A stretch of DNA of 63,640 bases, counting the filler, from Octopus bimaculoides (lineage: Eukaryota): the NCBI RefSeq assembly GCF_001194135.2. It is 8 parts of 7 records of this genome, joined end to end, with 100 filler letters (N's around TTAATTAATTAA, not from the genome) between each part and the next. Parts side by side here need not be neighbours in the genome. Positions count along the whole stretch, not along the records: positions 25,890 to 37,078 come from NC_068987.1; 7 more parts are not named here. One strand, written 5' to 3'. Both the position numbers and the translations under genes were made by a program. Within the stretch, counting starts at the first letter, position 1, and every line of letters begins with the position of its first letter. Under the pieces are notes generated by a model. It saw only the letters and a list, made by a program, of their open reading frames with translations, ran no database searches and was not told where the DNA came from. Of the stretch, positions 5,201 through 37,189 are shown one piece after another.

Positions 5201-6227
5201 AACAGACGGAAAGAAAGTAGTAGAGTGTTGGCGTGGAATAAATAAGTAAATATATATATAAATGGTTGGGCGAGTAGAAATGTTCAAGAGTCTAAATGAT
5301 CGAGTGATCAAATGGCTGTTCTGGATGTGGGTTTAATAAGATAAATATATACATAAGGAGATTTAGCAAACAAATTATAACCGTTGTGTGTTTTGAGTCC
5401 GCATTGGTTATATACTCAGTATATACTGAGCTCATCTTTGCTGCTTTTTGTTTTGTTCGTTTTCATTTTTCCGTTAAATATTTTTGAACTTTCCTTTCCC
5501 TTGAGGTTCTCACGGGAAGTTGTATCCAACTAGACACTTCTCCAGAATTTCTTTCCTTTAGCATGCACCGTGTATGTTTTGTGTGTGTGTGTATGTATGG
5601 GAGGGGGTATAAGTGAGTGTGTAGGTTCAGATACAAGTAAATAGACAAACAGACAAGCACTCACATATCTATAATATTGTGTGTGCGTGTATGGGCGTGC
5701 GTGCACGTGTGTATAGATGTACATACATATATTAATACATACGCACACATCCACACATACATTTACATATAGATATGAATGTGTGTATGTGCATGTGTTT
5801 GCGCACATATGTGTGTCTGTGTCTATGTATATATGTATGTATGCATGTATGTATATTTGTATGCACGTATGTATATATGTAAATTTGTACAATTGTGAAT
5901 AAATTCTGTTGGTTTTACCATGTTTAAAAAATGCGTTTGTTCAGTTCCTCTGTGTGTGTATGTGTGTATGTACGTGTATGAGTTGTGTATTTGTATATGC
6001 TTGTTTCTTGTTCGTGTTTGTATGATTGTGTACGTTTATTTGCGTGTGGTCGTGCGTGCCTGGGCAAAATATATCCCCTGTCCACTCTTTTCATTTCCCA
6101 TTTTTACTTTCCCTTCTTCCTTTTCTTTTAGTTTTTACCCCCTCTTTTCTCTTTGCATAACGAAACGAACTCATGTCCAGCTTCTTTGTTGCCGTTTTAT
6201 GAGAAATTCAGTGGCACAGCGTGCCAT

Positions 6228-9850: not shown

Positions 9851-10020
9851 TAGGCACGAAATTTTTGGGAAGGAGCCAGTCGATTAGATCAACCCCAGTG
9901 CGCAACTGATACTTAATTTATCGACCCCAAACGGATGAAAAGCAAAGTCGACCTCAAAGTTGAACTCAGAACGTAAAGACAGACGAAATACCGCTAAGCA
10001 TTTCGCACGGCGTGCTAACA
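9851..10020 (-). mobile_element. Meta-type tRNA SINE (partial)
   Basis: Homologous to 2702-2937 (ATTTATCGACCCC...GGATGAAA...GAACTCAGAACG...ATACCGCTAAGC). Confidence 0.85.
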
Positions 10021-25560: not shown

Positions 25561-25929
25561 TTGAAAAGATTTGTAAATGAACCACACAAGTAAGTAGATA
25601 TTAAAGATAAACAAAAATGAAAATGCCACTTTTTAAAAAATTGGGTGTTTTAATTAATTTACATTACATGTTTTGGTTTTTTTTAAAAAACCTTATCAAA
25701 AATGAGTAAAAAATATGTGAGAAGAGAAGAGGGCTATTAATAAAATAAAATTGAAATCAAAATTAAGAATAACATTCATAGTTTACTGTNNNNNNNNNNN
25801 NNNNNNNNNNNNNNNNNNNNNNNNNNNNNNNNNTTAATTAATTAANNNNNNNNNNNNNNNNNNNNNNNNNNNNNNNNNNNNNNNNNNNNTATAACAAACT
25901 ATGGGCTCCCGATGGCTTCAGAATTTTAC

Positions 25930-26130
25930 TCTATCACGTGACCTTATTAGGGGCCGTGATTGGTCAGTTTGCGTTCTGGCGGGAAAGGTTCGAAGAAGTT
26001 GCCGATTCGAATAATGATCAGTCACGTGATGACAAGGTTAATGGGTTCTCTACTACGCTCGCATTTATTTATATTTAAATGAGAAGATTGTATGTAATGG
26101 CGATAGTAGTTTGTATCTAAAGGCGGGAGG
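25930..26130. promoter_or_regulatory. Putative CpG-containing promoter-like motif cluster
   Basis: TCACGTGAC (25934-42), ATTGG/CCAAT (25959-63), GGCGGGAAA E2F-like (25978-86) and GTCACGTGA (26021-29) within ~100 bp in otherwise AT-rich DNA. Confidence 0.4.
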
Positions 26131-26136
26131 TAGTTT

Positions 26137-26177
<41 letters not shown>

Positions 26178-26268
26178 TAGGCCGTGTGTTTATATATAAA
26201 TGAAAAAATATTTCAATAAAGAATTCACCAAGAGCATTTTCTTTTTTCTTTTCTTCATTTTCACCCAG

Positions 26269-26312
26269 TTCTTTGTCATGTCACTCACGGAAGACCGAAA
26301 TATTTGAAGAGG
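26269..26312 (+). other. Putative 44-nt exon of an unidentified plus-strand transcript
   Basis: Long polypyrimidine tract ending CCCAG at 26268 and consensus donor G|GTAAGT at 26313. Two of three frames are open. No other exons were identified. Confidence 0.35.
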
Positions 26313-26637
26313 GTAAGTTGTCAGAGTCAATATTTAAAGACATTATATTGCAAGAATCTACCATGATTTTGTCCGCATATTCTTGATTGAATGGCAGTCT
26401 TTTAGTGTCCTGTTTTGTAAATAAATCCTGATTAACAACTTGTCCGAGATACGACATGTTTTAATCTGAAACTCCAATATCAACGTATAACTAACGGAGA
26501 ATATCTAGTTCTTGAATATGGTTTGAGATAAGGTTGAGAAACGCTTCTTTTCGTAGGACTCTTTAAAAACTTAATAAAAACATGCGAAGAAATCAAGGTG
26601 CCCACATGGCAAGCTGCTTTATATCGCAGAACGAGAA

Positions 26638-26970
26638 CTATTTCATATTTGAGTCACGGAACGTTACACTCGAACCGTCATTCGCTGTTGTCAACTTGGG
26701 AACAAAATCACCTCGTTTTAGAGAAACCGGAATCTTGAAGTTTGGTTGACTTTTTTCAACTTCTTTGAATACATGAAGTCTCCTGTTGTCGGAGCTATAG
26801 TATTTCCCGTCTTTTTCGTAAACGTCAATAGATGGGAAGTCGTTTGGCGATTTCTTACCAACTTTAATATCATGAATAGCATTTAATAATGGTTCCCCGT
26901 TTTGAAAAGAAGACTTAATAGTATCTTGAGAATAACGGATATCTCTTGGATTCATTTGTTGGTTAGCCAT
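26638..26970 (-). CDS. Intact intronless 110-aa protein, probable ParB/sulfiredoxin-like fold (Tox-ParB-like, DNRRL motif)
   Basis: Complex, non-repetitive ORF: MANQQMNPRDIRYSQDTIKSSF...FPSIDVYEKDGKYYSSDNRRLHVFK. Good ATG context (CCAACATGG). A paralog at 36153 shows codon-phase divergence (16 synonymous-only codon changes, one in-frame 3-nt indel), which supports coding status. The fold call comes from motif recall only. Confidence 0.8.
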   Translation of the reverse strand: MANQQMNPRDIRYSQDTIKSSFQNGEPLLNAIHDIKVGKKSPNDFPSIDVYEKDGKYYSSDNRRLHVFKEVEKSQPNFKIPVSLKRGDFVPKLTTANDGSSVTFRDSNMK

Positions 26971-27333
26971 GTTGGTTTACAAATATCAACTTCGTATTCA
27001 ATGAAGAAGTAACTGTTGTGGGTAATAAGAATGAAAGTGTTTTGGTTAGTATATAACTCGTGATTTCTATATTTGACGGAGAAAACAGTTTTAAAAACGT
27101 AGAATCAAAATTTATATTCACGTCAGTAGATAGCCGGTCCTTATTTTATCGAATCGAATTAATGAAATTCAAAGAAGGTTGACAGACTTGTATAATCTTG
27201 GACACTATCCGGAGGTATTGAAATGTGTTCGTAGAGACAAGTGTTTCGTGGTGACTCAATCCTGTCTAATCAAGTGTAGGCGAAGTTCAGTAAATATATA
27301 TTGAAGTGGCGGTGGTGGTGGTTGGTGTGTAGG
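26971..27333 (-). promoter_or_regulatory. Upstream/promoter region of the 110-aa gene
   Basis: TATAAA on the minus strand (27111-27116) and an AP-1 TGA(C/G)TCA site (27252-27258), both conserved in the paralog's upstream region. Confidence 0.6.
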
Positions 27334-28062
27334 ACGGGTGTGTTGTTTATGCCCATGTGTGTGATTGTATGCGTGTCTGTGTGAGTGTGTTGTGTTGGTG
27401 AGAAGTGTATGTGTATGTGGGTGTGTGTGGATGTGCGTGTGTGTGTGGGGTTGTGAGTGTTAGGTATGGGTGCGTGTGTGTGTGGGGTTGTGAGTGTTAG
27501 GTATGGGTGCGTGTGTGTGTATGCGCGTGTGTGTTTATGTGTGTCTGTATGTGTGTGCNNNNNNNNNNNNNNNNNNNNNNNTGTGCGTGTGTGTGTGGGG
27601 TTGTGAGTGTTAGGTATGGGTGCGTGTGTGTGTATGCGCGTGTGTGTTTATGTGTGTCTGTATGTGTGTGCACGTGTGTGTATATTTTTTGTGCGTGCGT
27701 GTCTGTGTATATTGTGTATGTTTTCGTGCGTGCGTGTGTGTTGTGTATGTGAGTGAGTATTGTGTATGTGAGAGGTGTGTTTATGTGTGTGTGCGTGCGT
27801 ATGTGTGTGAGAGCGTAAGGATGTGTGCCAGGTATGTGTGTTATTTTGTGTGTGCACACCTCTGTGTGTGTGTGTGCATGCGTATGCGGCTGTGTATGTA
27901 GGCGTGCGCGTATATATGGGTGTGTGTGTGTGTGTATAGGGCTGTGTAAGGTGTGTGTCTCTACCACTGTGCGTGTGTGTGTGTGTATATACGTGCGTTC
28001 GTCTATATGTGTGTGTGTGAGGGCGCGCATGTATGTTTGTCATGTGTGTGGGCGGTATATAT
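27334..28062. repeat. Degenerate (TG)n-rich tract with ~50-bp internal repeats (GTGTGGGGTTGTGAGTGTTAGGTATGGGTGCG...)
   Basis: Directly visible. The His/Thr-rich ORFs here are low-complexity artefacts. Confidence 0.9.
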
Positions 28063-28583
28063 NNNNNNNNNNNNNNNNNNNNNNNNNNNNNNNNNNNNNN
28101 NNNNNNNNNNNNNNNNNNNNNNNNNNNNNNNNNNNNNNNNNNNNNNNNNNNNNNNNNNNNNNNNNNNNNNNNNNNNNNNNNNNNNNNNNNNNNNNNNNNN
28201 NNNNNNNNNNNNNNNNNNNNNNNNNNNNNNNNNNNNNNNNNNNNNNNNNNNNNNNNNNNNNNNNNNNNNNNNNNNNNNNNNNNNNNNNNNNNNNNNNNNN
28301 NNNNNNNNNNNNNNNNNNNNNNNNNNNNNNNNNNNNNNNNNNNNNNNNNNNNNNNNNNNNNNNNNNNNNNNNNNNNNNNNNNNNNNNNNNNNNNNNNNNN
28401 NNNNNNNNNNNNNNNNNNNNNNNNNNNNNNNNNNNNNNNNNNNNNNNNNNNNNNNNNNNNNNNNNNNNNNNNNNNNNNNNNNNNNNNNNNNNNNNNNNNN
28501 NNNNNNNNNNNNNNNNNNNNNNNNNNNNNNNNNNNNNNNNNNNNNNNNNNNNNNNNNNNNNNNNNNNNNNNNNNNNNNNNNNN

Positions 28584-28915
28584 AGGTTAAAAATATAGCG
28601 CTGTTTCAAGTGGAGTCGCGAGGGAGTGGACCCATGGTGCAGGGCGAGGCCAAAAACGGAGATGTTAGAGGGGGAGTGGTTGGCCAAGTGGAAGTGACGG
28701 GCGACGGGGGAGTCCGAACCTAGCCGAACGTCCCTTAGGTGTTCGGTGAAACGGTCGGCCAGCTGGCGGCCCGTCTGCCCCACGTAGAGTTGGTTGCATA
28801 GGTTGCATTTGATGCAGTAAATTAGGTTGGAGGAAGTGCAGGTGAAACTGTGTGGAATGTGAAGAGTGTGTAGGTTCGACCCTGTGACAGAGTTGGTGAT
28901 GAAGGGGCTTATGAA
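28584..28915 (-). mobile_element. Penelope-like element GIY-YIG endonuclease fragment
   Basis: Translation FTCTSSNLIYCIKCNLCNQLYVGQTGRQLADRFTEHLRDVR...VARHF. Confidence 0.85.
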
Positions 28916-29039
28916 ATTTATACATAAATATTTGCTTAAAATAACATATATTTTTACATTTATTTATTTAACAGTATTTAACAAATAGGTTTATTGTCAA
29001 TTAAAAGATTTCGATTAAAAAACATATATAAAATCAAAT

Positions 29040-29113
29040 TGCCCATAAAAAGACCCCCTGTCTTGTCCTTGCGGACCCCCTTTGGTCTGTGGACCACAGT
29101 TTGAAAACCCCTG
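29040..29113. mobile_element. Probable terminus of a hAT-type element
   Basis: GCGGACCCCC...GTGGACCACAGTTTGAAAACCCCTG resembles hAT subterminal and TIR sequence. The other end was not located. Confidence 0.4.
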
Positions 29114-29251
29114 ATTTAAAGGACGATGACCAATGGAAGAGGTTTTCCTTCACAACCAATCTACCAAGCATGTGGTTGCTGAAAATCAACACTAAATTAA
29201 AAGAAAGCATGCATACATATGCACATGCATACATACATACATACATACATA

Positions 29252-30065
29252 CAGGGTGGGTGAAAAGTAACTAGGCATTAGAAATTACTTAAAGAACTTT
29301 TAGTATCACTGAAGTCCTGACAAAAACATTTTTTAAACAAACAACACTAATGAAAATTTCTTATTTTCTCATTTCTTATTTTGCAGATGGCCAGTCACTT
29401 GATTGTTCAGGAGCGAACTAACAAAGCATCACGCTATGAAGTGTGGAATTCCAATATTTTGGTTCAGAGATGGTGGCATGCATGGAAAGGTAAGCATGCA
29501 ACACTACGTCCAGAGACAACCAAATCCTGATCAGCAGAGAACGTGATAACGGTGCAAGAAACGTTTAATTGCAGCCTGCAAAGAATCAACACGTCAAGTG
29601 GCTCATGAAAGTAGACTAACAAGACACAATATGTACAGTGTTGTATAAAGAATTGAATTTTCATCCATGGAAACCCCATTGTGCACAGGAGCTAAAAGCT
29701 GAAGACTGTGACCACAGAAGTCCAGAACTTTAAAAAGTCCAGATCTTACTCCATGTGATTTTTACCTGAGAGGTTACACAAAAGAGGTGTACAGGACAAA
29801 ACCTTGCACACTGGACAACTTGGAGACATGGATTCAGGAGGTTCTCAATGATATCCCACACAATGTCCTTCAGAAGGTTGTTCATTCCATCCCTGGCCAT
29901 TTGAGAAAGCTGGTTCATGCCACTGGTGCTTACATTGAAATATATAGATTTACTTTCATTTTCCCATGTAATAAAGAACATATATGATTTATTTCAATAA
30001 ATTTGTAAAAGGAATATGGATTTTATTACCAATTTTTAATGCCTATTTACTTTTCATCCACCCAG
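29252..30065 (+). mobile_element. Internally deleted Tc1/mariner element (~814 bp)
   Basis: TIRs CAGGGTGGGTGAAAAGTAACTAGGCATT / AATGCCTATTTACTTTTCATCCACCCAG, flanked by TA within (TACA)n. Remnant transposase motifs SPDLTPCDFYL and VYRTKPCTLDNLETWIQEVLNDIP. Confidence 0.88.
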
Positions 30066-30893
30066 TACATACATACATAAATACATACATACATACATAC
30101 ATACACACATACATACATACAGGCCTTTTGTGACACCCTTACAGGCCTTTTGTGACACCCTTAAAATCAGGAACTTTTGAGCACACACTTGTACATACAT
30201 ACATAGATAGTGGAAGTCAACTTCTGACTCTGCAAGATGGCTTTCTAAACTCATTTCACTCGAGGAAGCATCTCAAGTTTAGTCTCTCCATCTCCAATGA
30301 CACCTCATATGTCCTTATACTCCAACCACAAGTCGGCCTTCCAGCAACATCCCAGCTACAGGGAAGTTGAGTCTTACAATATCAAATGACTCCACTGGCT
30401 AACCCACAAATTCTACTATACAAAGTGTGCGAGAGAACATGCTGGCTATCACATTAGTAGAAAGGGGCACCCCCGTGATCATGCTTGTTGCTGAATAGAC
30501 CTAACTTTGAGAAGTCGACACAACCACATTGGTGACACGAGGACTGTTTCGTGCCCTTCTTAGATTGAGGGGTCATGTCCTACATATATTTTCCAACATG
30601 GTTTAATTCAGTATAAGTAGACCTGTTGTTCACGAATTTTCAAATTACGAGTATAAGTTCAGATCAGTTAATCATGATTTTATTCAACATATTCCCTCTC
30701 AGGTGCACATACTTATTGCAGTGGCCCTTCAGTTTTTCTAAGCCCTGTAAATGAACTTGGAAGTTTCGGCCTCCAACCAGGCCTTTTGCAACACCCTTAA
30801 AAACAGGAACTTTTCAGCACCCCCATTTAATACTTACATACTTAATTTTCTTGTGGGTGACTTCAATATTTATGCTAAAAATGTTAAGAGTGC

Positions 30894-30930
<37 letters not shown>

Positions 30931-30932
<2 letters not shown>

Positions 30933-31420
30933 ACAGCTAGAATTAATAACAAAATTTCCAGCTGACATAGGATTGAAATTTTGCCAAAAGAAATGTTCAT
31001 ATTTGATTTTTCAATATGGAAAATCAGCCCCCATTCCCAAGATTCAAAACCTGTGCATTAATTGTTTCACCATCTCTCCTGTTTCACATAAAACATTCTA
31101 CAAGCACCTAGGCATTGATGAAATTATATCACATGAAGGCAATGTGAATAAAGATAGATTGAATCAAGAGTACAATACTAGACTTTAAAAAGTGTGGCAA
31201 TCGGAACTCTCCTTGTACAAGACAATATCCCAACATTTGAGATACTTGACTGATTTGTGGAGGAAATCCACCCCATAGACATTAAATCCCACAAGATACT
31301 GGCATCAATTGAAAATCTTCACAGAAACAGTGATATCGACAGATCCTAACTAAGAAGAGACGAAGAAGATAGTGAATTGGGATCAGTGGAGACAGCCTTC
31401 GAATGTCATCTAGTCTCTCT
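30931..31420 (+). mobile_element. RLE-type (R4/Dong-like) LINE RT C-terminal fragment
   Basis: ADIGLKFCQKKC...YKHLGIDE...EYNTRL*KVWQSELS...IDIKSHKIL...LHRNSDIDR. Confidence 0.75.
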
Positions 31421-32049
31421 CAGACAGCACTTCTGGGGACATTGTTGTTTGGGACAGACAAGTAAAAGTATATACCATCATAATTCAGCTGTCCTGCTGA
31501 TGTAAATATTTCTTTGAAGAGCACAGAGAAAGAAGACAACTTAGGACTGCTTTGAAAGCTCCAGCTTCTATATCCAGATTCTGAATTCACATTTATGCCA
31601 ATAATACTAGGTGCACTTTGATTTGTGAGTAAATGTATATGAGACAATCTGGTTAACTTAGTGTTTCCAGAAGAAGAAATCAACCAACTAACTCGCTCAG
31701 TACATGTGCAATCTGTGAGATAGTTAAGCTATATAAAGATATAAACTATGTATAGATATTTGTCTACATATAGGCCTCTTTGTCTTTTCCAAGTATTAAT
31801 AAACCCACTTGAGCCTGTACAAATCCTACGCTAGCATCTTCATCTAAATAATCCCATTTAGCCGAGAACCACTTAAACTACTTACACGCAAACATTCACC
31901 TCCCAACCCCCATTCGCTTTACACACTCCATAATAAATTATTTTACACCTACACAGGGCTTCCTCCATTACTACGAACTTCCTACAACTTTAAGACCTAA
32001 AGACACATAAATTCCTTACTCACCCTGGACTGAGTAATCTGGATAGAGT

Positions 32050-33002
32050 TAATATAGGATAAAATTTTCAAAAAATTTTATTAGTGGCCAGCATATTAAA
32101 AAATACCTTTAAAGGTGAAAATTATAAACAATTTTATAAGGGCAAAAGAAAAAATTCCTATCCCAAATATGCTGAGAATAGACTTTAAATCGTCAATAAC
32201 CACATATAATTCATCACTATAAGAATGCGTTTCGAAGCAAGCTAACAGAAATTTCTAAAAAATTCCGTTATTACCGAATCGGTCCAATCATCATCAGTAA
32301 ATACGTTAAGAAATAAATGAAATAGTTACTTGCACTCATGGAAGAAGCAGATGCAAAGCCATAAGTACACTTAAGTACCCCAAATATATCCAAACAGAAA
32401 TTTTGCAGTATACCTCAAGATACGTGCAACCTGACTGAAAATTCTCATAGAGTAAGAGACAGTCTGGAAGTGAATGGTAATAAATTTACATCTAATATAG
32501 GATAAAATTTTCAAAAAATTTTATCAGTGGCCAGCATATTAAAAAATACCTTTTAAGGTGAAAATTATAAACAATTTTATAAATAAGGGCAAAAGAAAAA
32601 AATCCTATCCCAAATATGCTGAGAATAGACTTTAAATCTTCTGGACTGTCTCTTACTGTATGAGAATTTTCAGTCTGATTGCACATGTCTCGAGGTATAC
32701 TGCAAAATTTCTATTTGGATATATTTGGGGTACTTAAGTGTACTCATGACTTTGCCTCTGCTTCTTCCATGGGTGCAAGTAACTATTTCATTTATTTCTT
32801 AACGTATTTACCAATGATGAGAAGAAAATTCTTTATGAATTAACTCAGAAATTGGACCGATTCAGTAATATGGGAATTTTTTAGAAATTTCTGTTAACTT
32901 GCGTTGAAATGCATGCTTATAGTGATGAATTATATGTGGTTATTGATGATTTAAAGTCTATTCTCAGCATATTTGGGATAGGAATTTTTTTCTTTTGCCC
33001 TT
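32050..33002. repeat. Nested tandem + inverted duplication (A-B-A-B'-A')
   Basis: A = 32050-32190 and 32493-32637; B = 32191-32470; the reverse complement of B and part of A lies at 32638-33002. Confidence 0.85.
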
Positions 33003-33029
33003 GTTTATAAATAAGGGCAAATTTTGGCA

Positions 33030-33300
33030 TTGAAAGCTACACAAATGCCAGGACAGGTCGACACTGCACAATGCCATCACGCTTTAGGACCAGTTACTGA
33101 AACATCCTGGGTTTCAGGGGCCCACAGCTTTTTAATATTCTCCTAAAAAGCCTGAGGGACCTACACAAAGTGGATGTAGGTATTTTCAAATCAAAACTGG
33201 ATTTCTTCCTGTTGAGAGTCCCAGATGAACCTACCTCGCATCAAGAGGTGTAAATGAGGGTAGTGACATCAAACTCCCTTATTCACCAAATGCCACATAT
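33030..33300 (+). mobile_element. CR1-clade LINE 3' remnant
   Basis: LGFRGPQLFNILLKSLRDLHKVDVGIFKSKLDFFLLRVPDEP. Confidence 0.75.
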
Positions 33301-33737
33301 TAGAGGAGCCTCTCAATAATAAGAGTAGCAAAATGGCAGTGCCCCAGCATGACCGCAGCTCTGAGCTGAAACTAGATAAAAATATATAAAGGGTTGGACA
33401 AAATAATGGAAATACCTATCATCATAGCATCAGATATCATCAAAAAAAAAGTAATTAAAATTCATTAAAATGACAGATCAATTGGACTTTCAAAGAAGTC
33501 AAATTGTTGGTGCTTGTATGGCAGGCGCTAGCATAATGAAAACAGCCAAAATGTTTGGTGTATCAAGAAGTACTGTCTCAAAAATAATAATAGCCTTTGA
33601 GAAAGAGGGAAAAACCATCTCCTCAAAACAAAACTCCGGAAGAAAACCAAAACTTTCTGATAGGGACCGTTGGACTCTTACGCAAATTGTTAGAAAGGAT
33701 CACAAAAGTACAGCTCCCAAAATTACAGCAGAGCTTA

Positions 33738-33985
33738 CAGTTCTATATTCAAAAGATGAGGAATTATGTACATTATTTACATTAAACGGATATTTGTCCT
33801 CATCTTGTTTGTTGTTAACACAACGTTTCGGCTGATATACCCTCCAGCCTTCATCAGGTGTCTTGGGGAAATATTGAAAATTTCCCCAGGACACCTGATG
33901 AAGGCTGGAGGGTATATCAGCCAAAACATTGTGTTAACAACAAACAAGATGAGGACAAATGTCCGTCAAATGTAAATAATGTATT
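33738..33985. mobile_element. Palindromic non-autonomous (Penelope-derived?) element with two hammerhead motifs, 10-bp TSD
   Basis: ~100-bp inverted arms span 33769-33983. TSD GCAGAGCTTA at 33728-37 and 33986-95; the sister Tc1 copy carries this 10-mer only once. Confidence 0.85.
33817..33862 (-). ncRNA. Minimal type-I hammerhead ribozyme motif
   Basis: The minus strand reads GACAC-CUGAUGA-A-GGCUG(GAGGGUAUAU)CAGCC-GAAA-CG-UU-GUGUU: intact core, 5-bp stem II, 5-bp stem I, GUU cleavage triplet. Confidence 0.7.
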
Positions 33986-34752
33986 GCAGAGCTTATTGAC
34001 CACCTTGAGAACCCAGTTTCCACAAAAACTGTTTGCCGGGAGCTGCACAAAGCCGGATTTCACAGGAAGGCTGCAATCAGAAAACTACTACTGTCAAAAA
34101 TAAATGTTGCAAAGCGTTTAGCTTGGAGTAAAAACCTACAGAATTGGTCCACAGAGCAGTGGAAGAATGTTATTTTCTCGGATGAGTCATCCTTTACCTT
34201 ATTTCTGACCACCGGCAGAGTATATGTAGGGAGACAGCAAAAAAAACCCAAAAAACTTTTGATCCAAAGTGCCTTCTTCCAGNNNNNNNNNNNNNNNNNN
34301 NNNNNNNNNNNNNNNNNNNNNNNNNNNNCCTTCATGGCAGAATTAACAGTCAAGACTATTCAAGCATTTTATTTGATCAAATTTATCCTATGGTTGCGGA
34401 ACTGTTTCCAGAGGGAAATGCAATCTTTCAGGATGGAAATGCAGCAATTCACACAGCTAAAGTTGTTACTGAATGGCACGAGGAACATTCTAATGAAGTC
34501 AAACATCTTACCTGACCACCACAGTCCCCAGATCTCAATATTATGGTGCATTTTAGAAAAATAAGTAAAGAGTTGATATCCTCCACTATCATCACTACAA
34601 GAACTGGAGACTATTTTAGCTGAAGAATGGACAAAAATACATTTGGAAACAATTCAAACTTTGTATGTGTCCATACCTCGTAGAATTCAAGCTGTAATTA
34701 CTGCCAAAGGCAGTCCTACACCATGTTAAAATAAATTTGTTGGAAATTTTAA

Positions 34753-34917
34753 GGCGCAGGAGTGGCTGTGTGGTAAGTAGCTTGCTTACCAACCACATGG
34801 TTCCGGGTTCATTCCCACTGCGTGGCACCTTGGGCAAGTGTCTTCTACTATAGCCTCGGGCCGACCAAAGCCTTGTGAGTGGATTTGGTAGACGGAAACT
34901 GAAAGAAGCCTGTCGTA

Positions 34918-34976
<59 letters not shown>

Positions 34977-35008
34977 ATATGTTTGTGTGTCTGTGTTTGT
35001 CCCCCCAG
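34753..35008 (+). mobile_element. CORE-like tRNA SINE (5' part)
   Basis: GGCGCAGGAGTGGCTGTGTGGTAAG...GGGTTCATTCCC...CCTTGGGCAAGTGTC: A box, B box and CORE-like segment. Confidence 0.9.
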
Positions 35009-35293
35009 NNNNNNNNNNNNNNNNNNNNNNNNNNNNNNNNNNNNNNNNNNNNNNNNNNNNNNNNNNNNNNNNNNNNNNNNNNNNNNNNNNNNNNNNNNNN
35101 NNNNNNNNNNNNNNNNNNNNNNNNNNNNNNNNNNNNNNNNNNNNNNNNNNNNNNNNNNNNNNNNNNNNNNNNNNNNNNNNNNNNNNNNNNNNNNNNNNNN
35201 NNNNNNNNNNNNNNNNNNNNNNNNNNNNNNNNNNNNNNNNNNNNNNNNNNNNNNNNNNNNNNNNNNNNNNNNNNNNNNNNNNNNNNNNNNNNN

Positions 35294-35592
35294 ACTTATT
35301 CTATCGGTCTCTTTTGCCGAACTGCTAAATTACGGGGACGTAAACACACCAGCATCGGTTGTCAAGCGATGTTGGGGTACAAACACAGACACACAAACAT
35401 ATACACACACATACATATATATATATATACATATATACGACGGGCTTCTTTCAGTTTCCGTCTACCAAATCCACTCACAAGGCTTTGGTCGGCCCGAGGC
35501 TATAGTAGAAGACACTTGCCCAAGGTGCCACGCAGTGGGACTGAACCCGGAACCATGTGGTTGGTAAGCAAGCTACTTACCACACAGCCACT
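35294..35592 (-). mobile_element. CORE-like tRNA SINE
   Basis: Near-identical reverse complement of the 34753 copy. Confidence 0.9.
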
Positions 35593-35757
35593 ATCTCCAG
35601 CAAGTTATCTTTAATTATTCTTTCTCAGAATACGTCTTTATCAGTTGGGAAATACAAAATATTTACTTTCATTTTAATTTCGAAGAAAATAATATGATGT
35701 TGTTATGGGTGTGTGTAGTTTTTGTTAGGTCATATCCTTTTCATTGAAAAACTTTTT

Positions 35758-35786
35758 ACTTTCACTTTCACTTTCATTTCCAAGAA
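35758..35786. promoter_or_regulatory. Tandem IRF-E/ISRE-like repeat fused to a GAS-like STAT site
   Basis: ACTTTCACTTTCACTTTCATTTCC (reverse GGAAATGAAAGTGAAAGTGAAAGT) overlaps TTCCAAGAA (TTC-N3-GAA), ~370 bp upstream of the paralog ATG. Confidence 0.45.
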
Positions 35787-35796
35787 AGGAACCAAC

Positions 35797-36152
35797 CTAC
35801 ACAACACCCTCCACTACAATATATATTTATCGAACTCCACTTACAACCCATTAGACAGGATTGAGTCACCACGAAACACTTGTCTATACGAACACATTTC
35901 AATCCCTCCAGATATTATCCAAGATTAAACAAGTCTGTAAACCTTCTCTGCATTTCATTTATTGGATTCGATAAAATAAGGAGCGTCTATCTACTGAAGT
36001 GAATATAAATTTTGATTCTACATTTCTACAATTGTGTTTTCTCCGTGAAACTTAGAAATCACTAATTATATACTAACCAAAACACTTTCAATTCTTATTA
36101 CCCACAATATCAACTTCTTCATTGGATACAAAGTCGATATTTATAAACCAAC
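35797..36152 (+). promoter_or_regulatory. Upstream/promoter region of the second paralog
   Basis: AP-1 TGAGTCA (35862-68) and TATAAA (36004-09). Homologous to 26971-27333. Confidence 0.6.
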
Positions 36153-36476
36153 ATGAATCGCACTACAATGAATCCAAAAGATATCTGTTATACTCAGGAT
36201 ACAATCAAATCCTGTTTCCAAAACAGGAGATGATTAGTTGATGTTATTGATGACATTAAACGTGGTAAAATTTCGCCTAACGATATAGAGGCTATGAACG
36301 TTTACCAAAGAAATGGAAAATACTATAGTTCCGGCAACAGGAGACTTAATGTATTCAAACGAGTACAAGAATGGAAATCAGACTTGGAGGTTCCAGTTAT
36401 TCTAAAACCACCAGGTAGTTTTATTCCCAACTTCACAACAAAGAATGATGGTTTGAGCGTAGAAATCCGTGACTAA
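36153..36476 (+). pseudogene. Paralog of the 110-aa ParB/Srx-like gene with a single in-frame TGA at codon 27
   Basis: MNRTTMNPKDICYTQDTIKSCFQNRR*LVDVIDDIKRG...YYSSGNRRLNVFK...EIRD. About 59/107 residues identical by hand alignment. TGA at 36231-36233; otherwise open. Confidence 0.8.
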
Positions 36477-37189
36477 TGGAAAATATGGAATACTATTCGT
36501 TCTGCAACATAAAGCAGCATGCCATGTGGGCACCTAAATTTCTTCGCATGATTTTATCAAATTTTTAAAAGAGTCCTACCAGTAGAGGCGTTTCCCAACC
36601 TTATCTGGCATAGTTATAGATGCGCACCCGCCAAATTTGTTGCCTCATAACTTCCAGAAAAATGGATAAATTTTCAACAAATACCGCTTAGATGCTATAG
36701 ATTCAGAGTATACAGGAATTTGTGGGAAAGAAATTTCCGATGGGGAGAGGAGTTTCGAAAAATTCACTTGATCCGACTTTTCTCCAGCGACCACTTCAAC
36801 AGCTTCGTCCAGCCAACGATGACCACCGCCGTCGCCACATCAGCAACAAGAGTCTACGACTACTATCCAGCATCATCGTCATGACCAACACGATTCTACG
36901 ATTACTACTACCAAGCATCAATCTCCACCAGCGTCAACACGACTTACTATGTACACCAAACCAAACCTCTCTTCGATTCTGTTAGGTGACTCAGCTTCAC
37001 CACGATAAACAAACAGACAAGAGTTCTTAAACAGACAAGAAATTCTCAGCCAGCGACGAACATCTGTATAACAAGAATNNNNNNNNNNNNNNNNNNNNNN
37101 NNNNNNNNNNNNNNNNNNNNNNTTAATTAATTAANNNNNNNNNNNNNNNNNNNNNNNNNNNNNNNNNNNNNNNNNNNNTCTACCTCCCA

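Follow-up and report, generated by a model that had tools for sequence, protein, structure and literature searches.

Results

The locus and its gene

The window analysed here is a stretch of 63,640 nucleotides, filler included, joined from parts of the Octopus bimaculoides genome (NCBI RefSeq assembly GCF_001194135.2), and all positions are counted along it. The piece from 25890 to 37078, which derives from NC_068987.1, contains an uninterrupted open reading frame (ORF) of 333 nt, running from ATG to TAG and encoding a protein of 110 residues (MANQQMNPRDIRYSQDTIKSS...FPSIDVYEKDGKYYSSDNRRLHVFKEV...; Table 1). A sequence-only reading of this DNA had characterised the ORF by two motifs, and both are present: IRYSQDTI at residues 11-18 and the pattern IDV...YYSSDNRRL at residues 48-65 (IDVYEKDGKYYSSDNRRL). 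The protein is free of cysteines, in agreement with the absence of a sulfiredoxin Cys motif stated in that reading, and neither a signal peptide nor a hydrophobic N-terminus was found in its 110 residues, a layout which, judged from the sequence, is cytoplasmic. No Rfam family and no tRNA gene was detected in the same piece.

The ORF is not a product of chance, since it is related to two octopus proteins and to a large family beyond them. A word-indexed search returned Octopus bimaculoides A0A0L8HIY3 with 61% identity (E 5e-33) and a protein from an octopus read-set assembly with 58% identity (E 5e-30). Exact-sequence look-ups for the loci of the encoded protein and of the O. bimaculoides relative yielded no record. 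An exhaustive HMM search, for which the query consisted of the encoded protein and these two relatives (three sequences), recovered 2607 cluster representatives (50% identity) at E<=1e-3, with 646 of them at E<=1e-10.

Table 1. Coordinates of the gene, its conserved motif, its flanks and its inverted duplicate.
Feature	Position	Strand	Basis
Intact single-exon CDS (copy A), 110 aa, stand-alone Tox-ParBL1 (ParB/sulfiredoxin-fold) domain	26638..26970	-	ORF list, homologs, AlphaFold2 models, Foldseek
S-D-N-R codons 60-63, first part of SDNRRL (residues 60-65), strand-to-helix junction	26780..26791	-	Conservation in 145 domains; predicted strand 56-59 followed by helix 62-74
Candidate promoter and 5'UTR; upstream block common to copy B, 87.5% identity	26971..27329	-	Alignments of copies A and B, L001 and octopus paralogs
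Candidate 3'UTR; downstream block common to copy B, 86.6% identity	26525..26637	-	Sequence reading
Inverted duplicate (copy B), pseudogene	36153..36476	+	TGA at 36231-36233 (codon 27), six family-conserved residues lost
Upstream flank of copy B, homologous to 26971-27329	35800..36152	+	Inverted repeats I1, I9, I11; alignment
Downstream flank of copy B, homologous to 26525-26637	36477..36606	+	Inverted repeats I7, I25; alignment

The gene (copy A) lies in an inverted duplication with arms of about 0.8 kb, which extend from 27329 down to 26525 around copy A and from 35800 to 36606 around copy B. Copy B corresponds to the paralog that had been described earlier as codon-conserved; the paralog does exist, but its coding sequence (CDS) is only 73.5% identical to copy A at the DNA level, is interrupted by an in-frame TGA and has lost the conserved residues R12, G25, P46, I48, D61 and K92, and it is therefore a pseudogene. 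The dN/dS between copy A and the closest intact copy, located on another octopus contig (L001), is 0.49. Between copies A and B the value is 0.68, and comparisons involving copy B range from 0.68 to 0.70.

The two arms are unevenly diverged. The flanks of copies A and B are 87.3% identical, a value significantly above that of the CDS (Fisher p 1.9e-6), and synonymous differences exceed the rate measured in the flanks (p 2.5e-5). Divergence extends from the ATG to the stop codon; flank sequences group A with B, while the coding sequences form a star with L001. This excess could stem from gene conversion between paralogs or from faster evolution of the coding sequence.

Upstream of the gene, a TATA-like TATATAC (27050-27056), about 85 nt 5' of the ATG, is kept in copies A and B and in L001, and an AP-1-like TGAGTCA (27252-27258) is kept in copies A and B only. 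Both elements had been pointed out in the sequence-only reading and are present, as candidate elements that are motif matches only. On the other side of the gene, an ATTAAA (26460-26465) is located farther downstream, beyond the block common to copy B.

Genomic surroundings

The DNA between the two copies is composed of microsatellites, assembly gaps, a Tc1/mariner-type helix-turn-helix (HTH) relic (33470-33835) and interspersed repeats which are 83-97% identical to many sites in chromosome loci of O. sinensis and O. vulgaris. The relic consists of an ORF with HTH_29 and Sleeping Beauty HTH domains, ended by a near-perfect palindrome of 107 nt (33769-33983), and represents the remains of a transposon. 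At 34752-35592, an assembly gap is flanked by two inverted copies (93% complementary) of an interspersed repeat that measures approximately 180-300 nt; further copies of this repeat (83-97% identical) recur many times at the loci of O. sinensis and O. vulgaris. Nested inverted repeats, with arms of 183 nt and 145 nt that are 92% complementary, occupy positions 32144-32995; part of this region (about 32050-32577) occurs once per 9.2-kb unit of an O. sinensis array and is possibly MITE-like. Furthermore, an ORF fragment at 28598-28783 on the minus strand (GQTGRQLADRFTEHLRDV...) adjoins an assembly gap. It encodes 65 residues without a Pfam match, and presumably resembles the GIY-YIG nuclease of a Penelope-like retroelement.

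Homologs and conserved residues

The eukaryotic relatives of the protein belong to several lineages. Among octopods they were found in Octopus sinensis, O. vulgaris, O. bimaculoides and Argonauta hians, and among bivalves in Mya, Mactra, Sinanodonta, Mercenaria, Ruditapes, Dreissena, Mytilus, Tegillarca and Mizuhopecten. Further members come from the tunicate Styela clava, the annelid Dimorphilus, a euglenid, a foraminiferan and MMETSP protists. The named eukaryotic relatives are always annotated as hypothetical or uncharacterised, and in many animal members the domain occurs in tandem, as two or three copies.

Alignment of 145 full-length domains revealed the pattern P..IR[YF][ST]QDSI...F..G / P.I.V / Y[ST].DNRRL..F / K.TT.N.G....R, and the octopus protein keeps all 28 positions that are conserved in at least 60% of these domains. 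Residues N62, R63, R64, L65 and G99 reach a conservation of 95-100%: N62 is found in 143 of the 145 domains, R63 in 142, R64 in 138 and L65 in every one. The position of S14, within IRYSQD, is occupied by S or T in 123/145. The sole oddity of the protein is H66, a position at which 132 of the 145 domains have Y or W.

Domain databases were silent on this family. Scans of the octopus protein against Pfam (to E<=10), NCBIfam and PADLOC returned no match, and a Pfam scan of 48 family members returned scattered chance matches only. The ParB_N model PF02195 did not match the octopus protein at E<=10 and matched one of the 48 members, at E 0.058. Likewise, single-sequence and profile searches of PDB sequences produced chance matches only, to adhesin P1, levansucrase and IgA protease.

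Predicted fold

Structure prediction with AlphaFold reached a pLDDT of 77.9 from three sequences, and a pLDDT of 90.3 with a pTM of 0.83 from 96 homologs. The predicted elements are a strand at residues 3-6, a strand at 11-13, a helix at 28-36, two strands at 48-53 and 56-59, a helix at 62-74, a strand at 80-85 and an ordered C-terminal loop. When the shallower model was compared with the PDB by Foldseek, ranks 1-37 were all sulfiredoxin, ParB, Noc or KorB, followed by SbnI, PadC and Spo0J. With the deeper model, ranks 1-31 were again exclusively Noc, sulfiredoxin, ParB and KorB (best E 2.6e-3); probabilities rose to 1.00 at moderate TM scores of 0.45-0.55, and fell below 0.1 outside the ParB/sulfiredoxin superfamily. 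A comparison with viral models gave named top matches that were all ParB/Sulfiredoxin. The fold proposed in the earlier reading is thus upheld by two models searched against the PDB and one against viral models, with structural matches essentially restricted to ParB, Noc, KorB and sulfiredoxin.

Profile comparison was less informative. Aligned by hhalign with 119 ParB_N domains, a set with little diversity (Neff 3), the 145 domains gave no significant match (probability 0.5%, P 0.11), and the elements brought into alignment are the topologically expected ones; with F-plasmid SopB as a single sequence, hhalign found nothing. Since the Pfam, NCBIfam and PADLOC scans were empty and the hhalign result was not significant, the assignment rests on the structure predictions and on the published HHpred match of the family, and these predictions support a ParB/sulfiredoxin fold for the octopus protein.

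Bacterial relatives in toxin cassettes

The kinship to RHS-type polymorphic toxin modules, also proposed in the sequence-only reading, is supported by HMM matches to the C-terminal ends of RHS proteins and of a PT-HINT protein, and by toxin cassettes on plasmids. The profile matched the last ~105 residues of four RHS proteins (P0053, P0127, P0152, P0110) and of one PT-HINT protein (P0103). N-terminal to the domain are RHS repeats in P0152, P0127 and P0053, an RHS core in P0110 and a pretoxin HINT domain in P0103. A tblastn search of plasmids added six further cases. On a Haliovirga abyssi plasmid, the domain forms the C-terminus of a 190-aa protein with a weak PT-TG match, and an ORF of 83 aa begins 4 nt downstream. 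An RHS-tip cassette on a plasmid of Bacillus toyonensis, part of an array with RHS-core and AHH cassettes, ends in the domain, and its end is overlapped by an ORF of 84 aa.

Both small ORFs encode Pfam DUF7660 proteins (E 6e-28 and 1e-26) with 42% mutual identity, and, judged from its sequence, the arrangement of a cassette with a small adjoining ORF is that of a toxin and its immunity protein. These ORFs lie directly 3' of their cassettes (5319-5570 in the Haliovirga locus L003, 5333-5587 in the B. toyonensis locus L004), and the two plasmids belong to unrelated bacteria, one being a Fusobacteriota and the other a Bacillus. DUF7660, a family listed by Pfam as of unknown function, is probably the cognate immunity family of these toxins; the partners named by Zhang et al. 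2012 are Imm-SUKH or Imm44 (PMC3482391). In the animal loci examined (octopus and Mactra), no DUF7660-like ORF was present, although membership of the family does not demand such a partner from eukaryotic proteins.

Animal loci and phylogeny

Other octopod loci show that this small gene family evolves by duplication and decay. The paralog of O. sinensis is part of a tandem array with a period of ~9.2 kb in which three of the four copies are broken. In this array (L005, CM016883.1, ~488-28738), the copy at 10010 is intact and those at 488, 19210 and 28452 are frameshifted or truncated. The O. vulgaris paralog is single-exon; octopod genes are intronless, and an intron interrupts the domain near codon 40 in the Mactra homolog.

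Domain architectures vary among the eukaryotic members. In Mactra antiquata (L002, CM103821.1), two adjacent genes of the family lie beside a C1q-domain gene. An O. sinensis protein (P0010, LOC115211823) and an O. vulgaris protein (P0017) carry the domain at the N-terminus; long repeats rich in Pro, Thr and Ser follow, and the terminal CCVIL or CVIL resembles a CaaX prenylation signal and suggests membrane anchoring. In the euglenid Rhabdomonas costata, a protein (P0119) combines six TCERG1-like WW domains with a C-terminal copy of the domain, an architecture which would point to a nuclear or RNA-processing role rather than to a toxin.

Octopod sequences form one clade in both of the neighbour-joining (NJ) trees computed. 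In the tree of 143 taxa, this clade is sister to a bacterial clade; in the bootstrapped tree of 44 taxa, octopods group with other metazoans in 54.5% of replicates, against 20.5% with bacteria. Because the two trees place the octopod clade differently, no claim of a separate octopod transfer is made.

Discussion

Assignment to the Tox-ParBL1 family

The family to which the octopus gene belongs was defined as Tox-ParBL1 by Zhang et al. 2012 (Biol Direct 7:18; PMC3482391), with Neisseria gonorrhoeae NGK_2271 as type member. Its definition includes a predicted ParB fold (alpha+beta), an N-terminal [ST] and a mostly-arginine [NT][RT][RT] motif, which is mostly N-R-R and corresponds to the arginine motif of ParB, and HHpred related it to Thermus ParB at 93% (PMC3482391). 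The contexts recorded for it include RHS, FilH, HINT, MafB and LXG/WXG, metazoan and protist members were noted, and eukaryotes were proposed to have acquired the domain from toxin systems, independently of sulfiredoxin (PMC3482391). In a literature search, neither the name Tox-ParBL1 outside this article nor an assay of any member was found, ParB goes unmentioned in two reviews from the Aravind laboratory, and the family is without a Pfam model.

With S14, N62-R63-R64, a predicted ParB fold and relatives in RHS and HINT proteins, the octopus protein matches the definition; it is assigned by the published signature and contexts. The structural and evolutionary reading made from the sequence alone is consequently supported. 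Its toxin kinship holds, but the exact family is Tox-ParBL1 and not classical Tox-ParB. Since the metazoan presence and a proposed bacterial origin were published in 2012 (PMC3482391), novelty is lower than that reading had assumed. The family and its metazoan members were already described computationally, and the octopus gene adds a member. It differs from the bacterial members in that the domain stands alone, in a cytoplasmic protein, without a trafficking module or an immunity gene.

Comparison with other ParB-fold proteins

The N-terminal domain of ParB, Noc and KorB (PF02195) shares with the octopus protein the succession of a strand, a Box-I-like segment, a helix, two strands, the twin-arginine motif, a helix and a strand. 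The HTH DNA-binding domain, the dimerisation domain, the ParA-binding motif and Box III of those proteins are missing from it. When Boxes II and III were compared, the twin arginine was found at the strand-helix junction with D61 in place of the glycine, and the domain ends before the helix of Box III (ENLQRE-type).

Sulfiredoxin offers a different parallel. Like the octopus protein, it is found in eukaryotes and consists of one ParB-fold domain, of ~100 aa; its ancestry is bacterial, and it is among the best structural matches (6ky4, 3hy2, 2rii; target-normalised TM up to 0.58). Sulfiredoxin has a catalytic Cys in FGGCHR. The octopus protein has neither this motif nor any cysteine and cannot, therefore, perform sulfiredoxin chemistry, and no sequence similarity between the two is detectable.

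An assayed parallel is ToxB, a warhead of CdiA toxins with the ParB-CTPase fold. A small immunity protein neutralises this toxin, which is an ATP-binding and ATP-hydrolysing protein in which the R108A substitution abolishes binding as well as hydrolysis; the GNHR of ToxB is equivalent to GERR of ParB (bioRxiv 10.64898/2026.05.05.722872). ToxB and classical Tox-ParB share with Tox-ParBL1 the fold and the use as polymorphic toxin warheads, and the phosphate motif would occupy the same strand-helix junction, as GNHR in ToxB and as NRR in the octopus protein. They differ in that PF02195 recognises ToxB and Tox-ParB but not the Tox-ParBL1 family. Moreover, Tox-ParB has DGHHR, while the octopus SDNRRL lacks the glycine of GxxR and has D61 instead, and the C-terminal half differs, with a K.TT.N.G....R loop replacing Box III.

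Proposed activity and the readings that compete with it

In ParB, ToxB and sulfiredoxin, the respective sequences GERR (Box II), GNHR and GCHR are located at a strand-to-helix junction and contact nucleotide phosphates next to Mg2+. By analogy, N62-R63-R64 (the family [NT][RT][RT]) would be the equivalent of this GxxR phosphate-binding motif. The protein would bind a nucleoside triphosphate (NTP) with Mg2+, with N62-R63-R64 at the N-terminus of helix 62-74 clamping the phosphates as GERR, GNHR and GCHR do. S14, Q15 and D16, in the IR[YF][ST]QD segment, would occupy the position of Box I, and the family-specific C-terminal loop K92-x-T94-T95-x-N97-x-G99...R105 would replace Box III of ParB. The NTP would then be hydrolysed, or its phosphate passed to a substrate. 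Mg2+-dependent NTP binding with hydrolysis or phosphotransfer is to be expected because D61-N62-R63-R64, the Box-I segment and the loop match by position. It is with fair confidence that we regard the locus as a genuine octopod gene for a single Tox-ParBL1 domain with such an activity; its part in the animal, as an intracellular conflict or immune effector, is speculative and only suggested by the data.

The main rival to NTP hydrolysis or phosphotransfer keeps the family and the fold, and makes the protein a metal-dependent nuclease, acting on DNA or RNA. Zhang et al. 2012 argued for a possible nuclease activity of ParB-type toxin domains, on the grounds that most polymorphic toxin warheads are nucleases (PMC3482391), and the B. 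toyonensis cassette does stand among AHH nuclease cassettes. Nevertheless, ParB, Noc, KorB and sulfiredoxin, which have been studied in depth among proteins of this fold, bind NTPs, twin arginines are typically found in phosphate clamps, and the sole ParB-fold toxin assayed is an ATPase with an essential GxxR arginine (bioRxiv 10.64898/2026.05.05.722872). Nuclease activity is considered unlikely.

Rather doubtful is the view that the domain has been domesticated into a non-toxic, nucleotide-dependent switch or adaptor, for which toxin ancestry would be irrelevant to the present role. ParB itself is a CTP switch, immunity partners are missing from the animal loci, and the low-complexity tails and CaaX-like ends of P0010 and P0017, together with the euglenid fusion to six WW domains, suggest scaffolding. 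On the other hand, the catalytic-looking residues are as conserved in animal copies as in bacterial toxins, and pseudogene turnover with fast CDS divergence is more typical of conflict genes. A strongly toxic activity is in turn hard to reconcile with animal genes near which no immunity-like partner lies.

The decay seen in copy B and in three of the four copies of the O. sinensis array, along with H66 in place of the usual Y or W, might indicate that the gene is itself an untranscribed relic, a recently dead duplicate still without a stop codon. This is improbable given that copy A retains every family-conserved position where copy B has lost six and gained a stop, that its dN/dS against L001 is 0.49, and that conservation extends to the upstream block, TATA-like element included. 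The ORF is a genuine, intronless octopod gene and is probably functional.

Bacterial contamination or a transposon-borne ORF, to which the bacterial identity of the closest non-octopod sequences (by BLOSUM distance) and the transposon relics between copies A and B could lend some colour, is rejected: octopus interspersed repeats around the gene exclude contamination, the neighbouring DNA is rich in AT and in microsatellites, other octopus assemblies contain homologous copies whose upstream DNA is conserved, and, with respect to the high-copy transposon consensus that the sequence-only reading had named as a finding that would speak against it, the 0.8-kb duplicated unit has neither transposase nor terminal repeats and is present in only two copies in the piece.

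Implications

Tox-ParBL1 is a large family distributed across bacteria, protists and several animal phyla. A cysteine-free, single-domain animal member of 110 aa represents a handy minimal construct for studying how the fold acts in this branch, and the octopus gene could reveal how animal cells tolerate and reuse a toxin warhead when its immunity protein is missing. As a long shot, octopods may maintain a lineage-specific, fast-turnover array of immunity-less Tox-ParBL1 immune effectors derived from bacterial toxins, whose coding sequences are diversified more quickly than the DNA around them, by selection or by exchange among paralogs. If this were true, such arrays would be the animal counterpart of polymorphic toxin cassettes, and the octopod effectors would consume nucleotides or modify nucleic acids inside host cells. 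On a broader scale, the expansions in molluscs and the octopod arrays may add a further bacterial toxin domain to those recruited into fast-evolving invertebrate gene families.
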